NCBI GenBank assembly: GCA_964035545.1
Contig: CAXIUT010000095.1
Location: forward strand, 1-16,278
From: Bugula neritina
Taxonomy: Eukaryota; Animalia; Bryozoa
DNA length: 16,278 bases
Direction of reading: 5' to 3'
Part shown: piece after piece, positions 1 through 16,278 of the stretch
Numbering within the stretch: position 1 is the stretch's first letter
Layout: each line of letters begins with the position of its first letter
The notes under the pieces: model-generated
Databases searched by the model: none
Told to the model about the DNA's origin: nothing
What the model saw: only the letters and a program-made list of their open reading frames with translations
Position numbers and translations under genes: made by a program

Positions 1-81
1 CCCAACCCCAACCCCAACCCCAACCCCAACCCCAACCCCAACCCCAACCCCAACCCCAACCCCAACCCCAACCCCAACCCC
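1..81 (+). repeat. Left telomere, (CCCCAA)n
   Basis: Perfect C4A2 tandem array at the window start, C-rich strand 5'. This is the Tetrahymena-type ciliate telomere repeat. Confidence 0.97.
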
Positions 82-174
82 TAATTGATTTAAAAGTAAT
101 TTTTAATTAATATTTTATCGAGGAATAAATATTAAAGAAAATAAAAAATTTTATTTTTACCTTTTGTGCACGAT

Positions 175-198
175 CCCCAACCCCAACCCCAACCCCAA
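175..198 (+). repeat. Internal telomeric tract (CCCCAA)4
   Basis: Four perfect units 93 bp inside the terminal telomere, same polarity. Confidence 0.93.
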
Positions 199-271
199 AT
201 TGATTTTTATTGATATATTTTTATTTATTTATCTAAACTGTTTTGATATAATTAATAATATTTATTCATCA

Positions 272-2509
272 TCATTTTTTAGCCTCATTTAGTAACGGAT
301 ACCTCATAAACTAACAGCCTCTTTGCAAGATAATTCTGATTTGATCAAAATTTTTCCACAAAATTTATAAACTACTTTCCTGTTTTAATGTTTTTTCAAA
401 TATCTAAACATAAGTATAAAGTTCTCTTAATAAACTAAAATGCTGAGAAAATAATTTTGTTCCTACATTCACCCTTTATTTAATCAAATTTTCGTTCTAA
501 TTTACTTCACTTTGTTGAGAATTCTTATTTAAAAACTGTCCATCATCTTGATTGATTATTTTTCTTTTTTATTAGATTTATAATTGTGTTTATTTTGAGA
601 ATTAAAAGCTTTCTTCTTTTTGTTTTTTATTTCTAGGACAAATGTGTAAAAAAGGAAATGGAGCATCAAAACCATATCTTTGAGTTGCTGTTATAAAATT
701 ATTGACATTAAAATCATAGCCATTTTTTCCAGCAGTAACAGTATATAGATAAAGTTTAGCCATTTGAAGATCACTTTTAATCGGAAAACGATACTGTAAA
801 TCATCACCAGCTCGATAAAGAAAGGTCTGATCAACAAAAATTTACTTCATCTCATCGATAGAAAAATATCCTTAGTTTTATTCAAATAGTCTTGAAAAAT
901 TTCTAGCTAAAGAACTACATATTCTTTTTTTAGAAGCCATATATTCATCAAAGAAAAGAGAAATAGCATAGTCAAAATCACAATATTACTATTTATCGAA
1001 AATTCTTAAATCTTTATCAAGTTTTGCCAAAAGTCTGGATTTATTTACTTAATCTGTAAAATATAAAGAAGCTTTAAGGAGTTTTTTAACTTGTTTAACT
1101 GCTATGTAGTTGACTCCTTCTTCCTCATAAGATTGATAAACTATCAGCTTTCTATAAATAGCAAAATAAAAATTTTGACTATTATAATCAAGTTTATAGT
1201 TGAATCCATCGATGCTATCAAATAAAGGATGATATCTCATTACATCCATCAGTTGACAAAAAAGTTATGCTTTTTTCCAATATCGACTATAATACTTTAA
1301 AGAAATAATAAACTATAGGAGCTTTACTTAGGCTAGTCTTCTGATTCTGTACTTATGAATAAAGTAAAATACTACAAATTAGTCAAATTGCATTCCATTT
1401 CCTATCACTCCTGTTGTCATCTCACTTTAATAATTCATTCTCTCTGAATATATTGATTTTATCAACTGTTTCATATATTACCAAGGAAGAACCTTACCAT
1501 TCTCATTATTTTTTGACATATTTTCAAGAAAGGTTAATAAAATTGGGGTAAGTGTCCATGGCTTATCAGCATGCTTTTCTATTTTAAAGTTTTCAACAGG
1601 TATGTTTTTCTCCTTGACCTTGAGCTGATCTATTAAATGTCCTTCTTTTGCAAAATCAACATTTATTGAGCTTGGGTCACCAAGTTCAAATGGAAGCTCT
1701 TACTGAGCATTTGTAAAAATGGCTCCAGCTTGAGTCAATAGTTCACTTTCATCAACTTGAGTTCCTGTTGAAACTTTACTACACTTAGTCATAGCTTTGA
1801 TCAATTCTCTCATATTTACTAAGTTCAATCCTGCTTCTTTTTGTTATTTTTCCATACTACCCATCATAGTTGAAAGCTACTTTAAAGATGAAAAAATTTC
1901 CGACGAGCCTTCTTATTCAGCTGCTTCTCGACTTTTTTACAGTTTGGTAAGATAATTTGATACTTTAGACATATCTCCTTGAAGAAGATGATATATTTAT
2001 CTCATTTCTGATCCAACCATTTAAAGTTATGTGTCTGCCATGCTTAATTGAGCACTTTAAAGTTATCTAAGATGTTAGATTTTTTATATTTTTTATTTCC
2101 ACTGCTCTTCTTGATTTTATAGTTCTCGATTGATTTTCAATAAAGCAGCATTCTTTTTATCTTTCTAATCAAGCAATCTATCACTTCTTTTTAAGAGCTT
2201 TACTACCACATATTTAAGAGTGTTCATGAAATCAGCCCAATTATCTTCAAAATTACCTGTTAGAAGAGGTTTATAAAGTCTAAGGTTGTCTAAGTTTTAA
2301 AGAAAATTATTATGTATAGGTTCTAATGAACGTACTATAGATAATACATCTTATCCAGTTTCTAAAGGAAAATCTTTTAGGTAGACATAGAAAGAAGGCA
2401 TTGTTTTAAGCTTAGACTAAACTGTAGAAGCTAATTCTTTCAGCTTTGTTTTTGATCTAAAATTAGATCTTTTAGTTGGAGAAGGAGTAAAAGCTATTGA
2501 ACTATCCAT
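272..2509 (-). CDS. Hypothetical coiled-coil protein, 745 aa (TAR read as Glu)
   Basis: ATG at 2509 (MDSSIAFTPSPTKRS...). One frame with no TGA until 274-272, followed by two more in-frame TGA. Contains track ORF 1049-1249 in frame. The N-terminal half is K/E/Q-rich and helical. Segment FVVFYFIHKYRIRRLAEVKLLEFIISLKYY weakly recalls TSNAXIP1-like ciliary proteins (inference, unverified). Confidence 0.85.
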
Positions 2510-2686
2510 ATTAAAATTATTATCACTGAGATATTTACTTCTTATATTTGAATAGTAATTTGCGATAATTAAATCAGATATAATAAGTCAAATAAGTTTT
2601 AATCAGATTAATAAATATAGATTAACTGATGTTGTTTGATTGTTTAAATAATTTAATTGATGAGATATAATAATTATTTGAGGTAA

Positions 2687-2920
2687 ATGAAGGTTAGATC
2701 TAGCGTGAAGAAGATGTGCAAAGGATGTAAGGTGGTCAAATATAATCAAAAAATTTACATAAAATGCAAATAAAATCCTAGACATAAACAAAGACAACTC
2801 TTTAGTACTGCTAAAAATAACTTTATCTATCCTGAATCTCTATCAAAAAATACTTTTAACATCATTCAAGTCACCATCAACAGAATCACCTATTCTGAAA
2901 TACAACAATGGCTTTTATGA
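2687..2920 (+). CDS. rpmJ: Mitochondrial-type ribosomal protein bL36 with C-terminal extension, 77 aa
   Basis: MKVRSSVKKMCKGCKVVKYNQKIYIKCK[TAA]NPRHKQRQ matches the bL36 zinc-ribbon signature (CxxC...C...H, NPRHKQRQ). Ends at TGA 2918-2920. Missed by the ORF track. Confidence 0.95.
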
Positions 2921-2922
2921 TA

Positions 2923-3014
2923 CTTAACTCAAATATATTTTATGGCTTAACTCAAATATATTTTATGACTTAACTCAAATATATTTTATGACTTAACTCA
3001 AATATATTTTAAGA
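2923..3014. repeat. 23-bp tandem minisatellite, about 4 copies
   Basis: Unit CTTAACTCAAATATATTTTATGA starts at 2923, 2946, 2969 and 2992, with few mismatches. It fills most of the convergent gap between bL36 and APC5. Confidence 0.95.
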
Positions 3015-3043
3015 TACTATTAAGATTTAATCAACCACTACCT

Positions 3044-5193
3044 TCAATTGTACAAACTTTTCAACTTATAAGCCACCTTTTCGATTAACTCTTTTTCATG
3101 ATATCGCTCATTCTAAATATTAGAAAACAAATTTAACACTTTCTAACAGTAAATAAGGATGTTGTTAATTGACCCTCTCTTTGAAGTCTTTAAAATATTT
3201 TAATATAAACCTACCATCTTATCCATTTCAAGAAGAACATGCTTTACCCCAACAAAATTATTCACTGATAGCTCAAGACTCAAAAGTTCTTCTAAACTTT
3301 AGAACTATTTTCTTTTAATATTTTAATATTCCTCTACAAAGTCTATATTATTAATAAAGTACTTGAATTCGAAGATAAAAGTTGGTATATAATTTGATAA
3401 GCTAGAGTTTTAGTCTCCTGAAAAATTATCTTTTTTTCATATTCTTTCCTAATAGAACTACTTTCTTGTTCAATCGACTTAAGCATGACCAAAGCCTAAT
3501 TAATTTGAATATTTAACTTAAATTGAATTTGAATTTTTAACAGCAGACAAACCACTTTATATTCAGACAATTTTTGAAGTTAACAATGCTTGATTACTTG
3601 TTAGACCTTCACCAGAGCATCATGATACATATTAGTATTCATCAATATTTTTATACTTACTATATGGCTTTCAAGCAACTACTCTTTTACATATCCATAT
3701 TTCAAACAAAAGTTAATCAACTATTAAGCTTCATGATATGAGTATGAGAAGTATCCATTTGCAAATTGGGTTTTCAAGATAGCTAATTTCAGATAAATCA
3801 AGTCTAATGGTGAAAGGGCTGAAGTCTCAAGACTCTTAAGTTACTGGAGATATTTTTATATAAGTTTTTTTTGGTTATTTTTTCTATACTGCTAAACTTT
3901 ATTAAAGAGTTGATCAAAAATAGATTTTTTTTGAAACTGTTGATAAGGCTCTGTTTATAGAAGTTAATTTCTTTGATAATAATCATTCATAAGAAGAGGA
4001 GTTAGCTCTGGCAAATGAGTTAGAACTGCTAGTTTACAAAGAAAATTGGGTAGTAAGAGGGATCTAAAGGAATGATAAATATTTTTACAGTTTGACTAAA
4101 AAGTATTATGAATTTTTTTTTTACTGAAGTGGAGAGCATCTGTCCAGTTAATATTTCTATGTTTAAGGAGCATAATATGAGGATCTTGAGTGTTATAATG
4201 TTTTTATGTTATACTGTAGCTGAGACAACTATAGACCATAAGCAGAATATTATTAAGATTAAGAGAATGAGTTATAGCATGCTAATTAAGAAGAATCTGT
4301 TAAGCGTGCTTTCCTAACTGTTCTGAGATGCGGTAAAGATATATTATGCAATTATTGATAGACTCCTCATCTGTATTGTTTTGACTGATCCTCATTCCCT
4401 CGGATATTGATTGCAAACTCTCTTATAAACAGTTTAGCTTGAGGTTAAGATAAGCATTTGATAAAATACAATGATTAATCTTATTACTCATAAGACTTAT
4501 CTCTGACTTCTCCTGGAAAAGGTTTCCTAAACTCTTATCAAAGTAACGGTGCATAGCACTGATAGCAGCGATAGGCTGTCCTGCATCAGCTCCAACCAAA
4601 GAACTTAAATAACTACTTTTGTGAGTGTGATCATATTAACTTAAAGCATTGACTTTTTTTGCTACTTCTTCAGGATTTACCTTATAATTTTACAAATTGA
4701 ATTTGATTTATTCAATTGATTTTGTTAGTAAAAACTAATGGTGGGGTTGTATTATGGGGTTGCCTTTTCTATATTCTTCAAACTGTTCATAAATTGCTAC
4801 CATCTCCTTAAAGTCAAGTTTTTAAAAATATATGTACATTCTCCTGACAAGGAAGTCAATAAGATTACCTTGTTCTAATTTGTTATTTCTTAAACTTCTA
4901 AGTGTCTTTAACATCTTTGACATTTATCGATAAAAGTCATTAAATGTTTTTATCTTTTTTATACTCTCTTGATAACGCTCCAAAAATTAACTACTATTAG
5001 TCACTGAAAGTAACTCATCTTCATACTGTTGATTGGTCAGACATTGAATAGAGTTAGTGGTACTCAGAATCTTTTCTATCAGAAACTGCACACTAGCATT
5101 TCTTGGATCTTTTTCTTCACCTTCGACAGTACTTTCATGAAGACAGAATAAAGTTGAAATCAAAGGAGGAGTAAAAAAGTTTGCATAAATCAT
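3044..5193 (-). CDS. APC5: Anaphase-promoting complex subunit 5-like, about 709 aa, one intron (3343-3362)
   Basis: N-terminal FFTPPLISTL, then LIDFLVRRMYIYF.KLDF, AISAMHRYFD and SLQSISEGMRISQNNTDEESINNCIIYL recall Apc5 motifs (LTP.K, FxRR...F.KL.F, LHRYFD, EAIRIAQ..D..CL). TPR-like helices follow. Exons 5193-3363 and 3342-3044 total 2130 nt and end in TGA. Confidence 0.82.
3343..3362 (-). other. Putative 20-nt spliceosomal intron in APC5
   Basis: GTACTTTATTAATAATATAG. Removal joins ...SSNS-N-FVEEY and extends the frame to TGA at 3046-3044. An acceptor 9 nt further on (29-nt intron) also restores the frame. Confidence 0.72.
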
Positions 5194-5365
5194 TTTAAAA
5201 ATTCAAATATAAACTCAATTAAACAAGTCATGATTAATTTAAAAATATAAGTCATTAGTTATTAATCAAAAATTAGGAATCGCTTTTTTTATTGTTTAAT
5301 TATAGATATTGATAATGGAAATCAATTTTATATGAATTAAAATTATATTACTTTGCTCTATTATA

Positions 5366-6757
5366 ATGATAGATTAGTCTAATTTGCCTGTCTGTCTGTA
5401 GTACTCCAAAGTGTTTGAAGACCTTAATGTATTGACTAAGTAAGCCAACTCTTCTCTTCCTAAAAAACCAACTTTTAGTAGTTTTTCTTTTAATCATCTC
5501 CTTTTAACAATCAATCAAAATGGCCTTAAAATTATTATTCGCTATTTACATTAAAAACTAAAAGGCCTTATTGAAAGTAAGCATCCAAACTACTCTCTCA
5601 ATGAAGATCTAGTAATTTTGGCAAATCTCAGGGTCAACTAATATAATCTACAAACTAAAAATATAGGCGAAGTAATGATTTAATTACTTCGAAATATGTT
5701 AAAAAAAGATTATATTGCAATAAACTAAATCTTGAATTTACTTCCAGGTCTTTTTTAATTTGAAAACACAATGAAAGTAATAGATAATAACTATCGATTC
5801 ATGATAATATTTCCTCATTAAAAGCTAACTGAATAGTGGATTATTTCATGGAAAAGCAATCAATTTCTTTAATACTGCTCTTTACCTTAAATTGATTAAT
5901 ATCTGCATCAATATACCATCGAAAATACATCAACTCAACTAGTATATATAAAAAATAATTATTAAACTTACTCATTCATTGCTAACTAAAACCATCCAAC
6001 CAAGAAATCAATTTTAAATCTTGCATAATTAAATGATAATTAAATAATAAATATTTAAGAAAAGTAATAAGAAATCTTCTCAATAATATAAATTTAAGAT
6101 AAATCCCAAATACATGCGAACAATAACTTATACTAATCTAAAATAAACATCAATTCATATTTTTAACCAGAAAAAATAAAATAATATAGCTAATTATAAA
6201 TCATATTTATAAGAAGAAAACTATTGAATTTATTATCTCTAAGAAAGTAACAAATAAAAATATCAAATAAAAAAAGAATATAAAAAGAATACAAATTTTA
6301 TGATAAAAAGAACAGAAAAGATATTACTTTATGTTTTTAAAATATATCAACTAAATGTTAATAATGGATTAATTCTTAGAATATAAATAATAAGTCAGTC
6401 AACTCAATGCTATAATTGTCAGAAATACTCATACAAATCCTACATTAATAAAATTCATAAACAATTATTAGAAAATAATTAAATGGTATCGTTGATCTGA
6501 CCTAAAATAGTTAAAACTAATAAAAATTAATTAATATCGATTTAATTTAAAATGATTATAATATCAATTGTAACTGTTTATCTCTCAATAAATAATCAAT
6601 CAGAAAAATGTCATAAACGAAAATAAAATAAATCTTTAAAGCAGCATAAACCAAATATAAGGATCATTCAAATAGTTCTTTTCTTTAAAACAAAATACCT
6701 ACTGAACAATCAAACAGTAAAAAAAATAAAAATCATTCTCGACATAATTTAAAATGA
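5366..6757 (+). CDS. Hypothetical N/K/I/E-rich protein, 463 aa
   Basis: ATG 5366 to TGA 6755-6757, 464 codons without an internal TGA. Fills the gap between APC5 and the kinase. No recognisable domain. Confidence 0.7.
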
Positions 6758-6790
6758 TATTGATAGCATTATTATTATAATATTTATAAA

Positions 6791-8041
6791 TCACAATGGA
6801 GAGTAAGGAGAGTCGATGTCTTGAACTACCGATTACTACATTCCAAATATGCTAGAGTTTGATTCTTACAAAATATCTTTTAAAGACTACTTAGAGGGAA
6901 TATCTTTTTGCTTTTTATCATCTGATGGATTGTGGGAGAAGTTAAATGGAACAGATAGCTGAAGATCCATCTCTGCTACAGTTTTCTAGTAATCCAAAGA
7001 ATGAATCATTTCCTAGTTTATGGAATCCGCCTTACTCAACCTTAAAAACCAAACATCTTTCAATGCCTCCTCAGCAGTTAACCTTTCCTCTTTATCTTTC
7101 TTCAAAAGTCTCTTCACCAAGTTCTTCGGACTCTGAGAACATTGAAAATTCAATTTTTCAGGAAATACTATATTTCCTTTAAGAATGTTAGCAATAGTAT
7201 CAATGTGGTACTAAGCTTCAAAAGGAGTTGAGCCAGTTATCAGTTTAAAGATAGTGACTCCTATGGCCCACAAGTCAACTCTTTCATCGTAGCCTCCTCC
7301 TTCTAACATTTATGGAGCTCGATAGTAAGGAGTTCCAGTAGGAGTAAGCATATCTCTCTTTATTCCTCTTTCTTATATTTTCTTACTTATACCAAAATCA
7401 ATTAATTTAATAGCTCTTTTCTATTGATCATAAAGAATGTTTTCAGGTTTAATATCCCGGTGACATATTTTCCTCTCGTGAATGTACTTTAAAGTTTTTA
7501 GTAATTGTTTTACTATAACTTTAAGTTCTTCCTCTGATTATATTTTCACTTCTTCAAGGTTAGGAAAAGGAAAGTATTCCATGACAAGATAACATCTAGA
7601 GTTTTTAGGTTAAAAAAAGAGAGCCTTATAGATTAAAACATGTTTGTATTTGAGTTCTTTAACTGCTACAAAATTCTTTTTCAAAAAAAGAGTATGCTAG
7701 TGTTCTAAAGTAATAGTTTTAACCGCCCAAACCTATCCTGTTAATTTTTATCTACATTTGTGTACGACTCCATGAGCTCCTTCCCCAGTCTTTTGTCCTA
7801 TCTCATATTTATCATTGAATAAAGATTTTCCACTCTATTACTAATCAGAACTAATTTCATTTTATACATTTTTAAAGTTGACATCTTTATCGAATAATTG
7901 TAAACTATTTTTTCTCTGTCGTTTTTATAATTTTTATACAAGTCTTTTTCCAGTCGCAAGAATCGCATTATTTGTAGATAAACTCTGTCTAATCAATGCC
8001 ATTTTATTCTTTCTAGAAACTGCCAAAGATTACTTCTACAT
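6791..8041 (-). CDS. Ser/Thr protein kinase, CAMK-like, 416 aa
   Basis: [44 protein letters not shown][TAA][26 protein letters not shown] at 8041 (alternative 8002) and TGA at 6793-6791. Confidence 0.95.
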
Positions 8042-8179
8042 TAAATAACTATTATTCTAAATTATCAAAGTTAAACAAACAACTAAAAAGTTATACTTTC
8101 TAATTAAAATTATCAATAGAATTATATTTTGAAAAACAACTCAGACTGTCTTGATATTTTTAGCTAAAATAGTTAAGAA

Positions 8180-9116
8180 TCATTCGAGTCTCCGATAATC
8201 CTCTTTCTTAAAACATGGACAACAAGAACAAAACCTCATCAACCAACTACTATTATCAGAACTACCTCTATGGCCACTCTTCTTTGACTCCAATTAAATT
8301 TGCTCCAACCTTCGATTCTACATCTTCAAAATTTCATCCACTTCTTTGCCCTTCCTTGAAATCTGCTTGTTGGGTAACTCATTCTTTATCTTCATTAATT
8401 TGATAAGTTCACTGTGTTACTGACTTTCTTTAACTTTAACCTTGTTATTAATAGGTGGAGTGTACTGCATAATGCCATACCTACAATAAAAGGAAGAATC
8501 TCAGTCACTCTCCACAAATACTCTTGAGAAAACTATTATTTTTTATCACTTTCCTTAGGTTTTAGATCCAGCTTTCCAGAAGAATCAGAGTTAAGTACCT
8601 TACCAAAGACCTAGTACTAGTCATTTTCTTTAATTTTCTTTTTATGAGAACAGAGATATGCCTGTGTAAAGATATTTTTAATAGTAATTAGTTCTCCTAT
8701 TCTCCAAAACTAATCCTGTCCATTATCAATCAACTCTATCGTCCACTCTTGGTGATCTTGGTAGTCTTTGGAAGATTAAAGAGAAACTTCCATGTTATTA
8801 GATATTGAACTTTCGAAGTGAGATGATAGATGCAATTGCTTATTTGTCTAGCTGTGACACAACAAAAGCTAATCTTTATATTTAAAGTGATAAGAACTTG
8901 AAGGGTCAATCCTTTTAACAGGCACAAACCTCAAATAAAAAAGAAATACCAGTCAGAATCATCAGATGACCTATGACATGATACAGCTTGCTTTAAAGAT
9001 CCTGAACTCCACTCAAATGGACAACTGTGTAGTCTTTGACCTGTCAGCATGTTTGTCAGTTTTATTTTGTCATAACACTTAATGTTGCTTCCATTTTGCA
9101 CTCCCTATTCAGCCAT
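8180..9116 (-). CDS. MIR-domain (SDF2-like beta-trefoil) protein with Cys-rich C-terminus, about 298 aa, two introns
   Basis: Three MIR-like repeats: IKLTNMLTGQRLHS...SGSLKQAVSC...DW, LLLCHSETNKQLH...NMEVSL...EWTIE, ITIKNIFTQAYLCSH...YEVFG...LWRV. Exons 9116-8950, 8929-8485 and 8464-8180 total 897 nt and end FCSCCPCFKKEDYRRLE-TGA. Confidence 0.83.
8465..8484 (-). other. Putative 20-nt intron (MIR gene intron 2)
   Basis: GTAGGTATGGCATTATGCAG. Removal joins ...ILPFI-YTPP and opens a 95-codon last exon. Confidence 0.62.
8930..8949 (-). other. Putative 20-nt intron (MIR gene intron 1)
   Basis: GTATTTCTTTTTTATTTGAG. Contains an in-frame TGA. Removal rebuilds TG|G (Trp) and puts MIR repeats 1 and 2 in the same frame. 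Confidence 0.8.
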
Positions 9117-9212
9117 TTATCACAATCAATCTTTTAAAATGAAAGTCATTTATTTTAATTACAAACAACCATTTAAGAATATTCAAAATATTAAATAATT
9201 CAAGATAATAGA

Positions 9213-11219
9213 TCACCAAACTTCGTCATTATAGAGAAGATTCATCAGCTTTCCAATCATACTCTTAAACATGGTATTTCTTGACACAATTCTCCTGGAT
9301 TCTTCCAAATCATCATCTCCGAAATCATAATTCCAAAAAGATAACTAGCAACCTTCTTCATTAAGCATCAACTTTGATATTTCATTAGAAAACAAAGTAT
9401 TACTCGAACTATACTTGCTCTTGCTGGTTTCTTCCTCAATAAAAATAGCCAAAATTGAATCAAGAATGTTAGGTTCTGCTTCTTGCTCACTAAAAGATCC
9501 CTTTGACCTGAGATAAGTCCTGAAATAAGCAAACCCTGATGCGATCTTTTTTATATTTTTCAAAGAATTACTATTAATGTATTTGTACTCTCTTGCTCTG
9601 AGAAAGTAGTGTTGGAGCAATTCCTGAGCTATTTTAGACTCCTCTTTAGTTTATTCGTTGTTTTGTTCTATTCCTTCAAAACTACTTTGATAATACTCAC
9701 TAATATGTTAAACTTTCTTTTCCTTGAACACTGTCTGGATGATGTCTTCATTTTTATTTATAAAGCTTTACAATCGCTGGTCCACCATTTCATCATAAAC
9801 CTCTCTACAAATGTTAATGTTCTTTTATACTGAAAGATCCATAATAATATCAATCTTCTATAACTGCAACTACTTCTTGTACTCAGAACTTGGTTCAGCT
9901 ATAATCCATAGAGTCACATTTATATTGAGTATAATTTTATCATTAACAAGACTGTTGATCAACTAGAAATCCCTTTTGTTTGGATTACTCACTAAAAGTA
10001 CTGAATTATTGCATTGAGATAAAAAAGTAATCAAAGTAGGTCCATCATATTGAGAAGGCCACTTATAGGTGCAAATTCCTTCAAGCCTGAGAGTCCTCTC
10101 AATAAAAGTCACTTATTCTGTTATAATCATTAAATGAAGAGTCTTCATATGTAGCTGGTTGAAAAGACTATTCAAAACTATTAACTTTACTGTTGATAAA
10201 CTATCTTCTTGCAGATAAGGAAATTTTATCTGATTAATCGTTTCAAGTAGTTTTTTGAAGTTATAAGCTATAGTTTCTTCATTCCTGGCATCTGAACAGT
10301 GAATATATTAGCAAGTAAGACCAGCTATTCTACTAAAAAAAGCATTATTACGACTTGTTCTACCATAAGAAGGATAGCTACTGATCAGATAACTTGAACG
10401 ACCTGTTTTTGCAACTATTCCTTATGTAGAAACCCTTGAAACATAAGGCTAAACTGATAAATAGGCACAAAGATCCAAAGAGTCTCCAATCTTTATAAGT
10501 CCAGAATGGTTTTGATCTAAGTAGAGTTCCATTTATCCTTTGTGAAATATCTATTATTTAGAATATCCTGACTTCATTGCACAAAAAATATTGATCTTCT
10601 GACAGTTCATGTAAACTTCATCCTCTACTTTAGAAAACTTCATCTTAGCAGAACAAAGACCACATCTTGGAATTTCTTTCACAACTACTTCCTTCAAATT
10701 TTGGGACTTACTTCTCACTATATCAATCAGTCTCTGTTTGCGTCTGAACGCCAACTTCTTTTAGTCACATTTACAAGCCAAATCCCAAACCTCAGTCCAG
10801 CTGGAAAGATACAACTCAAGTTGACTGATTTTCATTATCCTACAATCTTTCAGGTACACTAACACTCCATTGGTTTGTTCAAACACAGAAGTCAAGAATT
10901 AAGATGACTATAAGTTATGTCTTGGAAGAGAGCAGTTCTGAATCTGAAAGCTGAGATTTATTCCGAAAGCAGGAGCTTTTTTGTTTTATTCAGCCATCAT
11001 CTCAAGGACTGACAATTAAACCAGATGGGAAAACTCAGGGAAGTTTCCGATAATGAAGGAGGCAATTTATTTAGAGTTTCTGAGAGTTTTGATGAGGTCT
11101 ATTTTGACTGAGAGAGTCAGGATTCTATGAGTGTAGTCGTAGTTGATAGGTATTTGTTTGATGACAGAAGGAAGGTACTCTGCTTTGATATGAGTTTTGA
11201 GATGGTGTTCAAGCAACAT
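9213..11219 (-). CDS. MCMDC2: MCM domain-containing protein 2-like (inactive MCM family, meiotic recombination), 668 aa
   Basis: Single frame from ATG 11219 to TGA 9215-9213, linking track ORFs 10554-10754 and 9345-9620. Zn finger (CKC...CGLC), YMNCQKINI and OB-fold IKIGDSLDL. LHLMIITE stands where the Walker A strand would be, with no GxxxxxKS. Lid motifs LLQHYFLRAR, LKNIKKIASGFAYFR and DSILAIFIEEET. Confidence 0.7.
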
Positions 11220-11348
11220 TTTAAATTATAGCTAGTAATTAATTTGTTGACGATTTGAAGTTTAACTATTTTGAGTCAGATTATTATAATATTGAACTTT
11301 ATTTATAAATTAAATTATTGTCATTTACTTTATTTTGGTCAATGAAGT

Positions 11349-11415
11349 GGTTGGGGTTGGGGTTGGGGTTGGGGTTGGGGTTGGGGTTGGGGTTGGGGTT
11401 GGGGTTGGGGTTGGG
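11349..11415 (+). repeat. Internal telomeric tract, G-rich on + strand, 67 nt
   Basis: GG(TTGGGG)10TTGGG, 130 bp upstream of the MCMDC2-like start. Confidence 0.97.
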
Positions 11416-11568
11416 TAATTTTTTCGTCAAGTGAGAAAACAAAAGTAATTTTTGAATTATTCTGGGATAAGTAATAACTAATTCACTAAGAATCAATTTA
11501 ATTTTAATTTTTAAAATTACTCTTTATGACTTTACAATACTTTCTTGAATATTTTATTATTATAAATA

Positions 11569-14500
11569 ATGGGGTTGGGGTTGGGGTTGGGGTTGGGGTT
11601 GGGGTTGGGGTTGGGGTTGGGGTTGGGGTTGGGGTTGGGGTTGGGGTTGGGAGTTATTTACAAACGTTTCTAATAGTCGCGAGTTATAAACCGTAATCCT
11701 AAACACTAGTTACCTATCTAGGTAATAGCTCAATTGATATCATCACTTAAAGGGTGTCCTCCTTCTTATATTCAAAAATGTATATCTCAAGCATTAATAA
11801 AAGAAACAATTTCTTGGAATTAGTTTTTAACATTTTTAGATCAATAGAGTGAAGTCAGATAACAGATACTTGAATGGTTAATGTATGAAAAGACAGTTAT
11901 TAAATATAAAGAAGATAAATAATGGCCTTTGAGATCTAAAATTAATACCTTTTTTTAATAAATAACTTTTCTTAAATTTATATCATTAGGATAAAGCGAT
12001 AAACTTATTCTTTGCTGCATTGATAATGTTTAGTTCTTTTTACTAGAAGAAATTAACCATAAAATTACTATCATTGATAAGTATAAAAATAAATCAGAAA
12101 AAATAGCATAAGATAGACCTAAATTCATAGCATAAGATAGACCTAAATTCATAGAATAAGAAACTGGAAATAATAAATAAATGTCTAAAATACTCCTCAA
12201 AAATGATTCAAAAGTAAAAAAAAATAAAATCAATAGAAGTCTACATAGAACTTAAAAAAAAGAAATATAAAAAAATGTCAACCTAGTCATGAACTCATCT
12301 TCTAAAATGCCTTATATGACTAATTCAGTCAAATAAGATTAAGATTAATAAACCTACTTCAAAAAATAAAGAAAAAATATCAACTCTCTCTTCAATATTT
12401 GGAAAGATCTTGATTTTGATAATAGTGTATCATATGCAAAAGTAGTCGCTCCTAGAATTAGCGAAAGAGCCATCAATCAAGCACAGGTTTCTACACTAAA
12501 AGATCTATACAGTGGAATGGTCGAATAAAGACCTCATCACTAGAAGAAGCTGGGTGCTTCAAGTTATGGAGCAAAACCTCTAGACAAGGCTTATGGTCTA
12601 TTGAAGCAACTTCACCGTCAGAAACGTGTTCTAAGTTACAATCCATATGCAGCTGTTCGTAGTACAAATAATTCCTAGTACTAGATTCGTTTTAAGAAGC
12701 CGATCAAAGAGCGGAAAGAACGTGAATATACTCATGAGAACAATAAAGAAGTGTACAATAGTACGTTACGTTGTTTGGCAGTGATATATTTCAATATGTA
12801 GGTGGCCTTGATCAAAGTAGTAAAATAGTTTAACAAGGTAAGTTTGTAAGAGCAAGATAAAATAAGAATAATAACTGAAAACTAGCAGAAAAAGAACGAA
12901 ATAATCTAAGCTGTAGACTTTTACTATCACTCTATAGTAGGAAAATGGTTTTTGATAGTTCTTATTCGAGTCGAGTACAAAAACGAATTAAGAAATGAGA
13001 ACTAGTCGTATATTAGAGGGTATCAGATCAAGTTAGTGGATAACAAGAGACGTCAAGATCAAGATTACCGTTTTGTATCAAAAAAATAAGTATTTTCATT
13101 GAGTTTAAGCAACAAAGACAAAAAAGATGAATTAGTTCATCACGAAGTATTCAGAATGGAAATGCAAACTGAATACGGAATACATTTCATAACTGTTGGC
13201 GGAAAGTATCTTAGCATTCGATAAGATTACATTTAAAAACAAGGAATCAACTCATTGCTAAAATCAACTCAAACGACAACAAGTAAAAATAACTAGGATT
13301 TATATTTTACTTTTCATCATGAGGAAAAGTTTAAAAATTCAGGACTGAGTTTAAGTTGTTTATCTGTTGGAGTATAAATAAATAAAATAGTCTTTGGAAC
13401 CATTAGAGGAATCATGATTATCTACGACACCTTCAGCCACTTCTTCAAAATAAAAAAAGTAGCCAATTCACAGATAACCTAAATAAAAGTAGTAGGAACT
13501 TTAGCCTATGTTTTAACTCTTGATTAAAAGCTAATAGTAATCTAACTCATCAAATTGGACTAAGTACAACATCTAAACATTCGGAATTAAACCAAATTGC
13601 ACTAAAAAATAAAAAGCTTTTAGATATTTAAAAATTTAATATACTTCTATGGTACAGAAGTAAGATCATACTGTCAGTATATCAATGAATCACTCCAACA
13701 CTAAAAGAGAAAACTACAAACTATTTACAAATGGAGGTTGGACAAGTTATTGCATCAGTAAGACGTTTATTAGAAGGAATAAAAATAAAAACATAAAAAT
13801 ATTATCAAATATCTGCCAAAAAATGCTATATAGTCCAATATATCAAATATAGAAATGGTGCTAACTTCATAGTCATACTTTTTAGTTCTAACATAAGTAT
13901 TGTAGTTGATAGTAATCTCAAAAAACAACCTAAAAATAAAATTTACTATGATAGTACCCATTCCTCATGACAGTCAAGTCATGAAAATATCCCTATCACC
14001 CAATTAAAAACTACTAGCGCTGTTGTTATTCAACCAAAATATATATATATTCAATATTCATACTCAAGATCAATACCAGGTAATTAGACCTTCTCCTTAT
14101 CTTAAATTTACAGCTATTTCCTTTTTGGATACTAAAAATTAATATCTCCTTGCTTGTGGGACATAAAATGGTAAAATAATGTTGTCTCCTTATAGTACAA
14201 TTCCATAAAAACAACCTAAAATATTACAATCTCACAAAAAGACTATAACTTCTTTAGTTGTAGTTAAAAAATAGTATCTAGTCAGTTGTGGCTAAGATAT
14301 GCTCATCACCATCTGGCTACTTCCCTTCAATGTCCTCAAACATTAAATCAAACTCAACGCCAAAATAGGATACGTCCTAGAATAAATAAATTCATTCAAG
14401 TAATTTATATTCCTAAAAACTGTTTAATTAAATATCATCTAAATCAATGTCCATGAAGGTAAACTTATCAAATAAATCAAATAGGTCTAATCATGGATTT

Positions 14501-14754
14501 GTAGTAAAGTCGATCAATGTACTGGGGAGTTGATAGGTATCAAAAAAGGCAACATTCTTTAAAGAATGGTCAAAAGTAAAGATAGATGGGGAAAAACACT
14601 AGGTGTGAAGGTTTAAGTCAATAAAAGTGAGATCAGAGATTTAGGATTAATAGATAGCTAGAAAGTAGTAATATTTTTGGAGAATGGAACTGTAATAACA
14701 TGGCTATTCCATGGATAAAAATTTGGAAAAACCATCAACATTTGTCAATAATGA
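11569..14754 (+). CDS. Large WD40-repeat protein, about 1035 aa plus 26 telomere-encoded residues
   Basis: 1062 codons without an internal TGA, from ATG 11569 through the telomeric tract to TGA 14752-14754. WD40 blades include LLACGTENGKI and QSHKKTITSLVVVKKEYLVSCGEDMLITIW. N-terminal EF-hand-like ETISWNEFLTFL. The start is uncertain (next in-frame ATG is 11881). Confidence 0.8.
11571..11651 (+). repeat. Internal telomeric tract, G-rich on + strand, 81 nt
   Basis: GGG(GTTGGG)13, overlapping the ATG at 11569-11571. Confidence 0.97.
12103..12161 (+). repeat. 24-bp in-frame tandem duplication (IAEDRPKF x2 plus partial)
   Basis: ATAGCATAAGATAGACCTAAATTC twice, then ATAGAATAAGA. Confidence 0.9.
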
Positions 14755-14872
14755 TTTATCATATCTTTATCAATCATTATAGAACTAGGACTCATTAGTT
14801 ATATTTAAAGATAATATTCTTTTTATGTTAAATTAATACTGAAGTAAGAAATAGAATAGCCAAATGAATCAT

Positions 14873-15793
14873 TCAGGTTTCAATAATATGAGATAACTCC
14901 TGGTTGTGCTTTATTAATAAATTCCATGTTCCTGAATACTAATATGAAGTCTAAAATCCTTCATAGTACCACTTTCCTTTAATTTCTTAAGTCTTTACAG
15001 AAGTAGACTAATAGACAAGAGTATGCCAAGATCCTGTCTGACCTGCCCCAGCTGCATTATTATAATACTTCAACATCCAAAACAGCAAACCAGATTGAGT
15101 AATCAAAAATGCTCCTTTTCCTTTCCAACTCCCGAAATAGTCAGATCCTCTTATCTACAAATCACAATTCACAAAATTTACTTTTTTAACTACAAATGAT
15201 TCAACCTTGATATCTCGAGCTTCTTCTTTCTGTTTAAAAGTAAAAAAACTCTCTGAGGTCTGAACTCCCTTAAAAAGTTTTTCAAAAGCAGATAAATGCA
15301 ACGAGAATTATTATTCACACATCTAACTGCTCTATTTCTATGAAAAATTCTATCGATATTTATCAACTGCAGACCTTCTTATTTTACCTTCTGAAATAGA
15401 TTGCCTACACTTACTACAACAAAACATCACAAGACACACCAGACAAGCTATTCCAGCTATTCCTCCTATGATTGATATACCTATTATCCTATCCCTTCTG
15501 ACCTTTTATTGACATTAATGATCATCTTAAGCACATCCTCCACCTCCATTTCCCCCACTTCTATCACCATAGCCATATCGACCTCCATAGCCATAGCCAC
15601 CTCCATAACCCCCTCCATAACTACTTTCACCTCCATAGCTACTTCCACCTCCAGAACTACCTCCTCCTCCATAGCTACCACCACCTCCTCCTCCTCCTCC
15701 TCCTCCTCCTCCTCCTCCTCCTCCTCCTTGTCCTTGAGTGTAATTTACTACTAACACTAAGACCAATATCTTGAGAATGTTTGCAAGTTTCAT
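14873..15793 (-). CDS. Gly-rich type I membrane protein, 306 aa
   Basis: Signal peptide MKLANILKILVLVLVVNYTQG, then poly-Gly and SYGGG/YGYG region, TM helix IIGISIIGGIAGIACLVCLVMF, juxtamembrane CCSKC, and a beta-rich C-terminal domain. Track ORF 15527-15793 continues through TAA to TGA 14875-14873. Confidence 0.88.
15684..15728. repeat. (CCT)15 microsatellite encoding poly-Gly on the - strand
   Basis: Perfect trinucleotide run inside the Gly-rich CDS. Confidence 0.9.
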
Positions 15794-16016
15794 TTACAGT
15801 TACAATTTATAAGATAACGTTTGGGTATTTCTATTTATACACCTATTCCATGAGATTTAGTCTATATTTTTAGCAATTTTAGTCTATTTTTTAAATTACT
15901 TAAAATTCAAGATAAACCTTTATCATGTTTAAAAAAGTCCTTGACTGATCTTTCTCAATCTAAATAACCAATATTTATCATTTACTCATAGTTTGATTTT
16001 AACAATATCTATCACA

Positions 16017-16091
16017 GGGGTTGGGGTTGGGGTTGGGGTTGGGGTTGGGGTTGGGGTTGGGGTTGGGGTTGGGGTTGGGGTTGGGGTTGGG
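16017..16091 (+). repeat. Internal telomeric tract, G-rich on + strand, 75 nt
   Basis: GGG(GTTGGG)12, 94 bp inside the terminal telomere. Confidence 0.97.
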
Positions 16092-16185
16092 TCTTAAATC
16101 ATCATCTTAAATCACATCTAATAATTTTGAAATTATTGAATAATACTTTGATGATTATTTGGATGGTTCAATATTTTATATTTGA

Positions 16186-16278
16186 GGGGTTGGGGTTGGG
16201 GTTGGGGTTGGGGTTGGGGTTGGGGTTGGGGTTGGGGTTGGGGTTGGGGTTGGGGTTGGGGTTGGGGTTGGGGTTGGG
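16186..16278 (+). repeat. Right telomere, (TTGGGG)n
   Basis: Perfect array running to the window end, G-rich strand 3'. Confidence 0.97.

Follow-up and report, generated by a model that had tools for sequence, protein, structure and literature searches.

The 16,278-nt contig CAXIUT010000095.1 of the Bugula neritina assembly GCA_964035545.1, which we analyzed at its full length (hereafter, the window), carries six perfect arrays of the telomere-type repeat C4A2/G4T2, one at each end and four embedded within it. With outward-facing arrays at both ends, the contig is a complete, linear, ciliate-type molecule, and because the internal arrays can all be read in the register of the terminal ones and most match them in size, they look like complete telomeres, their synthesis begun de novo on unique sequence and ended at the terminus found at the true ends. 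The single explanation that we prefer, with belief and doubt about evenly balanced, is that such molecules are native head-to-tail chains of telomere-ended units. When all readings in which the joints were made in vivo are taken together, an origin in the cell rather than in the library is probable, although this is not settled: it is favored, not proven.

The six arrays are maximal perfect tracts that form three same-polarity pairs, the members of each pair lying 93-154 nt apart. An 18-nt C4A2 probe matches the window 51 times and shuffled versions of it not at all, and Tandem Repeats Finder scores the five long arrays as 100% matches with no indels. The left pair consists of the terminal left telomere, (CCCCAA)n (1-81, 81 nt), with which the contig starts (CCCAACCCC), and an internal C4A2 tract (175-198, 24 nt, or 23 if its first C is assigned to the preceding GATC), which is the left telomere of the segment that we call unit A. 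Between them lies spacer 1 (82-174, 93 nt, 15% G+C), an orphan sequence whose inner end, ...GATC, abuts the inner C4A2 tract. Unit A itself (199-11348, 11,150 nt) holds about five genes when TAA and TAG are read as sense, and is followed by the central pair: internal G4T2 tract 1 (11349-11415, 67 nt), which is perfect and passes from ...TTGGG into TAATTT; spacer 2 (11416-11569, 154 nt, 18% G+C), also an orphan, which shows no coding signal and is covered by contigs of two public sequencing runs (X1 and X2, below); and internal G4T2 tract 2 (11570-11651, 82 nt), again perfect and passing from ...TTGGG into AGTTAT. Unit B (11652-16016, 4,365 nt), with two convergent genes, has no left telomere. 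To its right come the perfect internal G4T2 tract 3 (16017-16091, 75 nt; ...TTGGG, then TCTTAA), spacer 3 (16092-16185, 94 nt, 19% G+C, an orphan as well), and the terminal right telomere (16186-16278, 93 nt of G4T2), with which the contig ends ...TTGGG. The junction words at tracts 1-3 are GGGTTGGG followed by spacer 2, unit B, and spacer 3, respectively. A first-pass annotation of this DNA had described the same three pairs of perfect tracts, and its description is borne out to within one base: tract 2 starts at 11570 rather than 11571, and of the three spacer lengths that it gave, 93 and 94 nt stand whereas 155 nt becomes 154.

The polarity of the arrays is equally regular. The outermost two face outward with the 5′ end of the C-rich strand at the outside, as in a complete linear ciliate macronuclear chromosome, and each internal array is oriented as a telomere would be if it capped the DNA on its inner side, an arrangement that fits the two left and four right ends previously proposed. 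All four internal junctions are telomere-to-unique, with one polarity per side, and the window contains no telomere-to-telomere junction. Single-polarity arrays with unique DNA on both sides, a feature of interstitial telomeric sequence, are thus present, and at all four internal sites the long molecule keeps an array of 24-82 nt rather than plain unique sequence. As the first-pass annotation had also said, the tracts lie in intergenic-looking DNA and the spacers are AT-rich and without obvious mutual similarity: their G+C content is 15-19%, versus 29-30% in the gene-bearing units A and B; no coding signal was found in any of them; and 42 comparisons of the spacers with each other and with the neighboring subtelomeres gave no significant similarity. 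An origin of the spacers by slippage or duplication, which predicts spacer/subtelomere similarity, was rejected, as there is none beyond chance. Nor did we find a large repeat linking units A and B. Spacers 1 and 2 do have in common, on the plus strand, an exact 13-nt word, AAAAGTAATTTTT (within 92-109 and 11441-11459), located 10 and 25 nt after the array on its left; its p value against shuffles is borderline, ~0.01 before correction for the 42 comparisons.

The ends of the arrays are more informative than their mere presence. Read in the G-strand orientation, four of the six begin with GGGG directly after an A, and the other two depart from that start by no more than one or two T or G. An ending of ...TTGGG fits all six, and for five of them (both contig ends and the three internal G4T2 tracts) it is unambiguous; the sixth, the 24-nt inner-left array, ends as TTGGGG followed by ATCG or equally as TTGGG followed by GATCG, an ambiguity of a single G. 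If registers were random, the four internal tracts would match the terminal one with p ~0.001-0.02, and the three internal G4T2 tracts, at 67, 82, and 75 nt, are the size of the terminal arrays (81 and 93 nt). The shared ...TTGGG terminus would correspond to a fixed 5′ end of the C-strand. In addition, four of the six addition sites have the pentamer TCAAT no more than 22 nt away, which 23 of 1000 random sets equal, and it lies by none of the four partner ends, that is, the ends of the pieces that abut an internal array and have no telomere of their own. TCAAT may therefore be a candidate subtelomeric signal or a signal for breakage and telomere addition.

Two details of the partner ends deserve separate mention. 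At the inner-left junction (171-175) the letters run ...GTGCACGATC followed by CCCAACCCC, with the GATC of spacer 1 ending where the array starts in the native end register. Spacer 2, for its part, begins TAA. Both GATC and TAA are ends left by the enzymes used for Hi-C (proximity ligation); the other two junctions fit no such site.

Could these junctions have been manufactured by assembly or by the polymerase chain reaction (PCR)? Normal chromosome ends supply only words that run from unique sequence into G4T2 or from C4A2 into unique sequence, so no overlap or graph path built from them can spell the reverse passage, from G4T2 into unique sequence; as a matter of logic, that junction must be present in reads. 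PCR jumping between arrays was likewise rejected as a source, since the end of a nascent G-strand pairs only with C-strand arrays, beyond which the molecule ends, so that only normal ends are regenerated. Three routes are then left: joining in the cell, ligation in the library, and a template switch by a polymerase after run-off. A merge of ordinary nested isoforms during assembly or consensus building, with no read containing an internal tract, was one of the two origins suggested in the first-pass annotation. Alternative telomere addition is certainly common in ciliates (PMC6937825), and the window is a single assembled contig, but the required word is not available from normal ends, and separately assembled contigs of X1 and X2 keep the same spacing over tracts 1 and 2, in colinearity with the window across the central pair. 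We regard such a merge as unlikely in principle and, on this evidence, as very nearly excluded.

The comparison with public runs covered 10300-16278 and four runs (X1-X4), all in the form of assembled contigs with the arrays masked, so that colinearity here is a matter of coordinates alone. One X1 contig (record 1, 5,179 nt) aligns in two pieces, 3517-4557 on 10300-11340 of the window and 4876-5179 on 11659-11962, and the 318 letters between the two pieces are equal in number in record and window. At 39.8 and 35.4, compared with 67.4 for the contig, the depths of the X1 bins are consistent with record 1 covering spacer 2 as well. In X2, record 10 aligns with spacer 2 (11423-11563) and with 11659-15670, with 95 letters between in both, and another record ends 36 letters into tract 1 and overlaps record 10 by exactly 30 letters. 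No contig of the four runs was seen to connect the flanks of a tract without the tract itself. At five sites X2 departs from the window where X1 agrees with it, whereas at 13954 X1 and X4 differ from the window and X2 agrees; given these differing single nucleotide polymorphisms (SNPs), X1, X2, and the window do not represent a single data set. The contigs of X1 terminate at GATC and GAATC, the pattern of an Arima-type Hi-C library, and on this basis X1 looks like a proximity-ligation library rather than a product of multiple displacement amplification. X3 and X4, which come from other studies and carry other organism labels, have low-depth contigs on portions of A, spacer 2, and B and give no readable junction. 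Additional free copies of unit B, which the X1 depths (67 for A and ~130 for B) might suggest, were rejected: X1 is broken at GATC and GAATC, and its depth follows restriction sites.

The reading that we favor takes these observations of anatomy, register, polarity, and coordinate colinearity and adds a joining step. The contig would be a real macronuclear minichromosome of a peritrich-code ciliate, a chain in which spacer 1, A, spacer 2, B, and spacer 3 are the five units, and whichever end of a unit points away from unit A would bear a complete telomere array. Telomerase would begin each array on unique sequence, in most cases by adding GGGG after an A, and the array would stop in the ...TTGGG register of the true ends, presumably set by the 5′ end of the C-strand. 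The finished, blunt end would then be ligated to, or extended on, a piece of DNA that is telomere-less on that side, through either end-joining or a template switch, and the far end of the joined piece would have carried a telomere of its own or received one. The setting would be the cell, most likely the developing macronucleus, a stage of low copy number and very active end-joining at which one event could become the dominant form; and because an amitotic macronucleus has no centromeres, such chains could be tolerated and amplified. We put forward more tentatively, as something that we would sooner doubt than assert, the broader proposal that the somatic genome of this organism is routinely built of head-to-tail chains, finished telomeres, their C-strand terminus fixed, being joined to telomere-less fragments during macronuclear development.

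Several observations weigh against an origin as native chains. Perfect tracts, units that possibly start within genes, and a partner that starts with GATC are also expected of joining in vitro. X1 and X2 belong to one study and may themselves have supplied the window, and none of the four runs has a contig on spacer 3. According to Logan's authors, the contigs of an accession are constructed such that no 31-mer occurs in them twice, a rule that forbids contigs with perfect hexamer arrays of 67 and 82 nt, and yet the coordinates are colinear; X2 record 10 stops in the (CCT)15 repeat at 15684-15728, just as the rule predicts. In view of this rule and of the masked letters, we count the run contigs as coordinate support only. 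A 60-nt query made only of junction-spanning words listed no run, a result that is uninformative, as two words were sampled among runs of kind dna and the holder runs are of unknown kind. In exact scans of Joint Genome Institute (JGI) metagenome contigs, neither the beginning of unit B nor spacer 2 retrieved another copy, and the protein collection contained no exact product of the open reading frames (ORFs) that cross or flank the tracts, nor anything else from this organism.

The most direct competitor is that the joints are chimeras of the library or of amplification: native blunt telomere ends were ligated in vitro to the ends of other fragments, or a polymerase that had run off a chromosome end switched template, and the assembly was then made from jackpot products. 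In long-read data from ciliate nanochromosomes, embedded telomeres are a recognized artifact and are removed by filtering (PMC6937825). The proximity-ligation ends at two of the four partner starts (GATC at the inner left and TAA at spacer 2), for which we estimate p ~0.04, point the same way, as do the perfection of the tracts, the possibility that units start at arbitrary places, and the 31-mer inconsistency in the contig evidence for native molecules; the remaining two partner starts, which match no Hi-C enzyme, speak against it. Moreover, ligation or switching at random does not hit a given base repeatedly, yet two runs with different alleles are colinear at the same junctions. Random blunt ligation should also yield head-to-head telomere junctions, none of which are present; random-primed amplification would be expected to give ragged array ends rather than a single register; and PCR jumping between arrays, by the logic given above, makes only normal ends. 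Taking both sides into account, we find such chimeras unlikely. We judge about equally improbable the other origin suggested in the first-pass annotation, namely that the germline carries A, spacer 2, B, and spacer 3 as one continuous stretch and that breaks at programmed sites were healed on one side by telomerase and then rejoined, leaving telomere scars, such that the long isoform keeps the tracts and shorter nested isoforms end at them. The two-left, four-right polarity suits that scheme, and tracts 1 and 2 lie between divergently oriented genes, a layout that allows colinearity. The distances from tract to first ATG are also similar (129 nt at the right of A, 229 nt at the left of B, and 223 nt at the right of B), and TCAAT near four of the six addition sites hints at a breakage/addition signal. 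The X2 depth, 11.1 on A versus 9.0 on B, leaves room for a minority of shorter isoforms, a compatible but weak sign; contigs do not show the ends of molecules. Against these stands the requirement that one side be healed to full telomere length, and to the mature end register, ahead of rejoining. A tract-free joint of the flanks appears in no contig, although germline DNA would be too rare to show.

A further difficulty for colinear scars lies at the left edge of unit B, where programmed sites, which normally avoid genes, would be misplaced if the unit starts within one. In the frame of the unit B gene, 11653-11880 comprises 76 codons with no TGA and no ATG, the first in-frame ATG being at 11881. 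This stretch scores 0.067 per codon, versus 0.10 ± 0.055 for coding windows and -0.19 ± 0.13 for off-frame windows, of which ~1 in 100 scores as high. Upstream there is a single in-frame ATG, at 11569 within spacer 2, and from there tract 2 would be read as (Gly-Leu)13 into the long frame of unit B. A coding-like stretch that lacks an ATG and extends up to the junction at 11652 suggests that unit B may begin inside a coding region, which weakens the case for colinear scars. Of the first-pass proposal that breaks are rejoined in vivo to leave scars, the in vivo part is therefore favored, though not proven, whereas the colinear scars are weakened both by this signal and by the orphan-like character of the spacers. 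We consider it quite improbable, more so than scars or chimeras, that the tracts are instead encoded in the germline, as micronuclear G4T2 arrays (for example, telomere seeds or fossils of healing) retained wherever the macronucleus does not cut. The apparently equal length of tract 2 in the window, X1, and X2 despite SNPs would fit a fixed, inherited insert, with the caveat that the SNPs may be alleles within one clone, and internal telomeric repeats in germline or polytene chromosomes of other ciliates are cited in PMC7285179. But the arrays are perfect over 67-93 nt, whereas inherited interstitial arrays normally decay or slip, and their sizes match those of live telomeres.

How would native head-to-tail chains compare with what has been described elsewhere? 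Alternative telomere addition in the ciliate Oxytricha generates nested isoforms, the long isoform having no repeats at the internal site (PMC6937825, PMC3558436). As in those isoforms, nested molecules here would share one end and stop at internal, mostly intergenic sites with repeats added de novo by telomerase; unlike in them, full arrays persist in the long molecule, paired at distances of 93-154 nt. The nearest mechanism is that of the short interstitial telomeric sequences of vertebrates, which arise by telomerase insertion during double-strand-break repair (PMC2246262, PMC7215372): there, too, an array of one polarity has non-telomeric DNA on both sides, and a 3′ end is healed and then rejoined. 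The vertebrate cases, however, are rare evolutionary events in the germline, usually short and often degenerate, and are proven by empty orthologous sites, whereas the arrays described here are telomere-sized, perfect, frequent, and somatic, with no empty site known. Endonuclease-less Penelope-like retroelements form terminal arrays interleaved with telomeric repeats in bdelloid rotifers and other organisms (PMC8557442), and share with our window a head-to-tail chain at a chromosome end in which repeats, an added unit, and more repeats follow one another in one polarity; their units contain a reverse transcriptase, unlike the 93-154-nt non-coding AT-rich units found here or unit B with its ordinary genes. 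Chimeric long reads of nanochromosomes (PMC6937825) likewise have non-terminal telomere arrays inside one sequence, but they are single-read artifacts that join whole chromosomes, while the junctions in the window are telomere-to-unique, have one polarity, and recur by coordinates in two runs. Finally, telomere-type repeats occur at internal positions in germline or polytene chromosomes of Stylonychia and Tetrahymena, according to work cited in PMC7285179; those repeats are germline sequences, mostly associated with transposon-like elements, and are removed from the macronucleus, and internal telomeric repeats in spirotrich macronuclear contigs are described there as extremely rare. For peritrich macronuclei, our literature searches turned up no description of internal telomere arrays.

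Telomeres are defined by their protection from joining. If native, the arrangement would be a variation on what is already known, and it would hold real interest for the study of telomere capping: regular, perfect, telomere-sized internal arrays, all of one polarity and one register, would mean that the cell routinely joins or extends capped ends and survives. It would offer a natural system in which to study the capping of new telomeres during ciliate genome fragmentation, the setting of the C-strand terminus, and the behavior of internal arrays at replication. Were chains to be built routinely, the joined pieces would include orphans of ~100-150 nt as well as pieces of genes, and full arrays would be kept in stable, amplified minichromosomes; the arrays would then serve as internal linkers as well as caps, each internal array being a potential alternative end. 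If the junctions are artifacts, on the other hand, the assembly over-joins chromosomes on a large scale and its gene order is untrustworthy.

The genetic code of the contig points to the kind of ciliate involved. Long TGA-free frames contain 3.5-10 TAA or TAG per 100 codons, and in the gene at ~8216-11219, aligned with two distant homologous contigs, TAA falls opposite Glu in 13 of 21 instances and TAG in 17 of 23, each position being counted once per homologous contig. From these alignments, TAA and TAG are assigned to Glu, with TGA as the sole stop, which is the peritrich nuclear code. These distant eukaryotic homologues, found with a 101-aa piece of the gene that adjoins tract 1 (the best matches are 65% identical), are Logan contigs L001 (60% G+C) and L002 (46% G+C), neither of which contains telomere repeats. 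RNA runs under the same species label as the best DNA holder runs contain next to none of the window's words; from this, and from the GATC and GAATC ends of the best holder's contigs, we infer that the ciliate was sequenced as a cobiont when the genome of a host was the target, and that proximity ligation was among the library types of that project. To our knowledge, extensive macronuclear fragmentation is not usually described for Oligohymenophorea; here, a ciliate with the peritrich code has a 16-kb chromosome of roughly seven genes with telomeres of only ~70-90 bp.

Among the genes of unit A, the one at ~8216-11219 (minus strand) is conserved in eukaryotes, and a putative kinase-like gene lies next to it (~6794-8140, minus strand), with a sub-threshold Pfam match: a stop-free piece at 7016-7210 (minus strand) resembles the C-terminal part of the protein kinase domain (E = 1.2e-5, 25.3 bits versus a Pfam cut-off of 31.7). 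Unit B contains one gene at ~11653-14751 (plus strand), the stop-free pieces of which gave no Pfam domain, and a second at 14876-15793 (minus strand). Across the 18 stop-free pieces searched, Pfam returned that single sub-threshold kinase match and three weak matches to domains of unknown function, with no reverse transcriptase; Rfam and tRNA scans of the window gave no matches. Within 15530-15793, the second gene of unit B has a signal-peptide-like start, followed by a long low-complexity region rich in Gly, Ser, and Tyr that includes the (CCT)15 repeat mentioned above. A 23-nt tandem repeat (4.2 copies, 94% matches) occupies 2913-3011, in the gap between two minus-strand genes of unit A.

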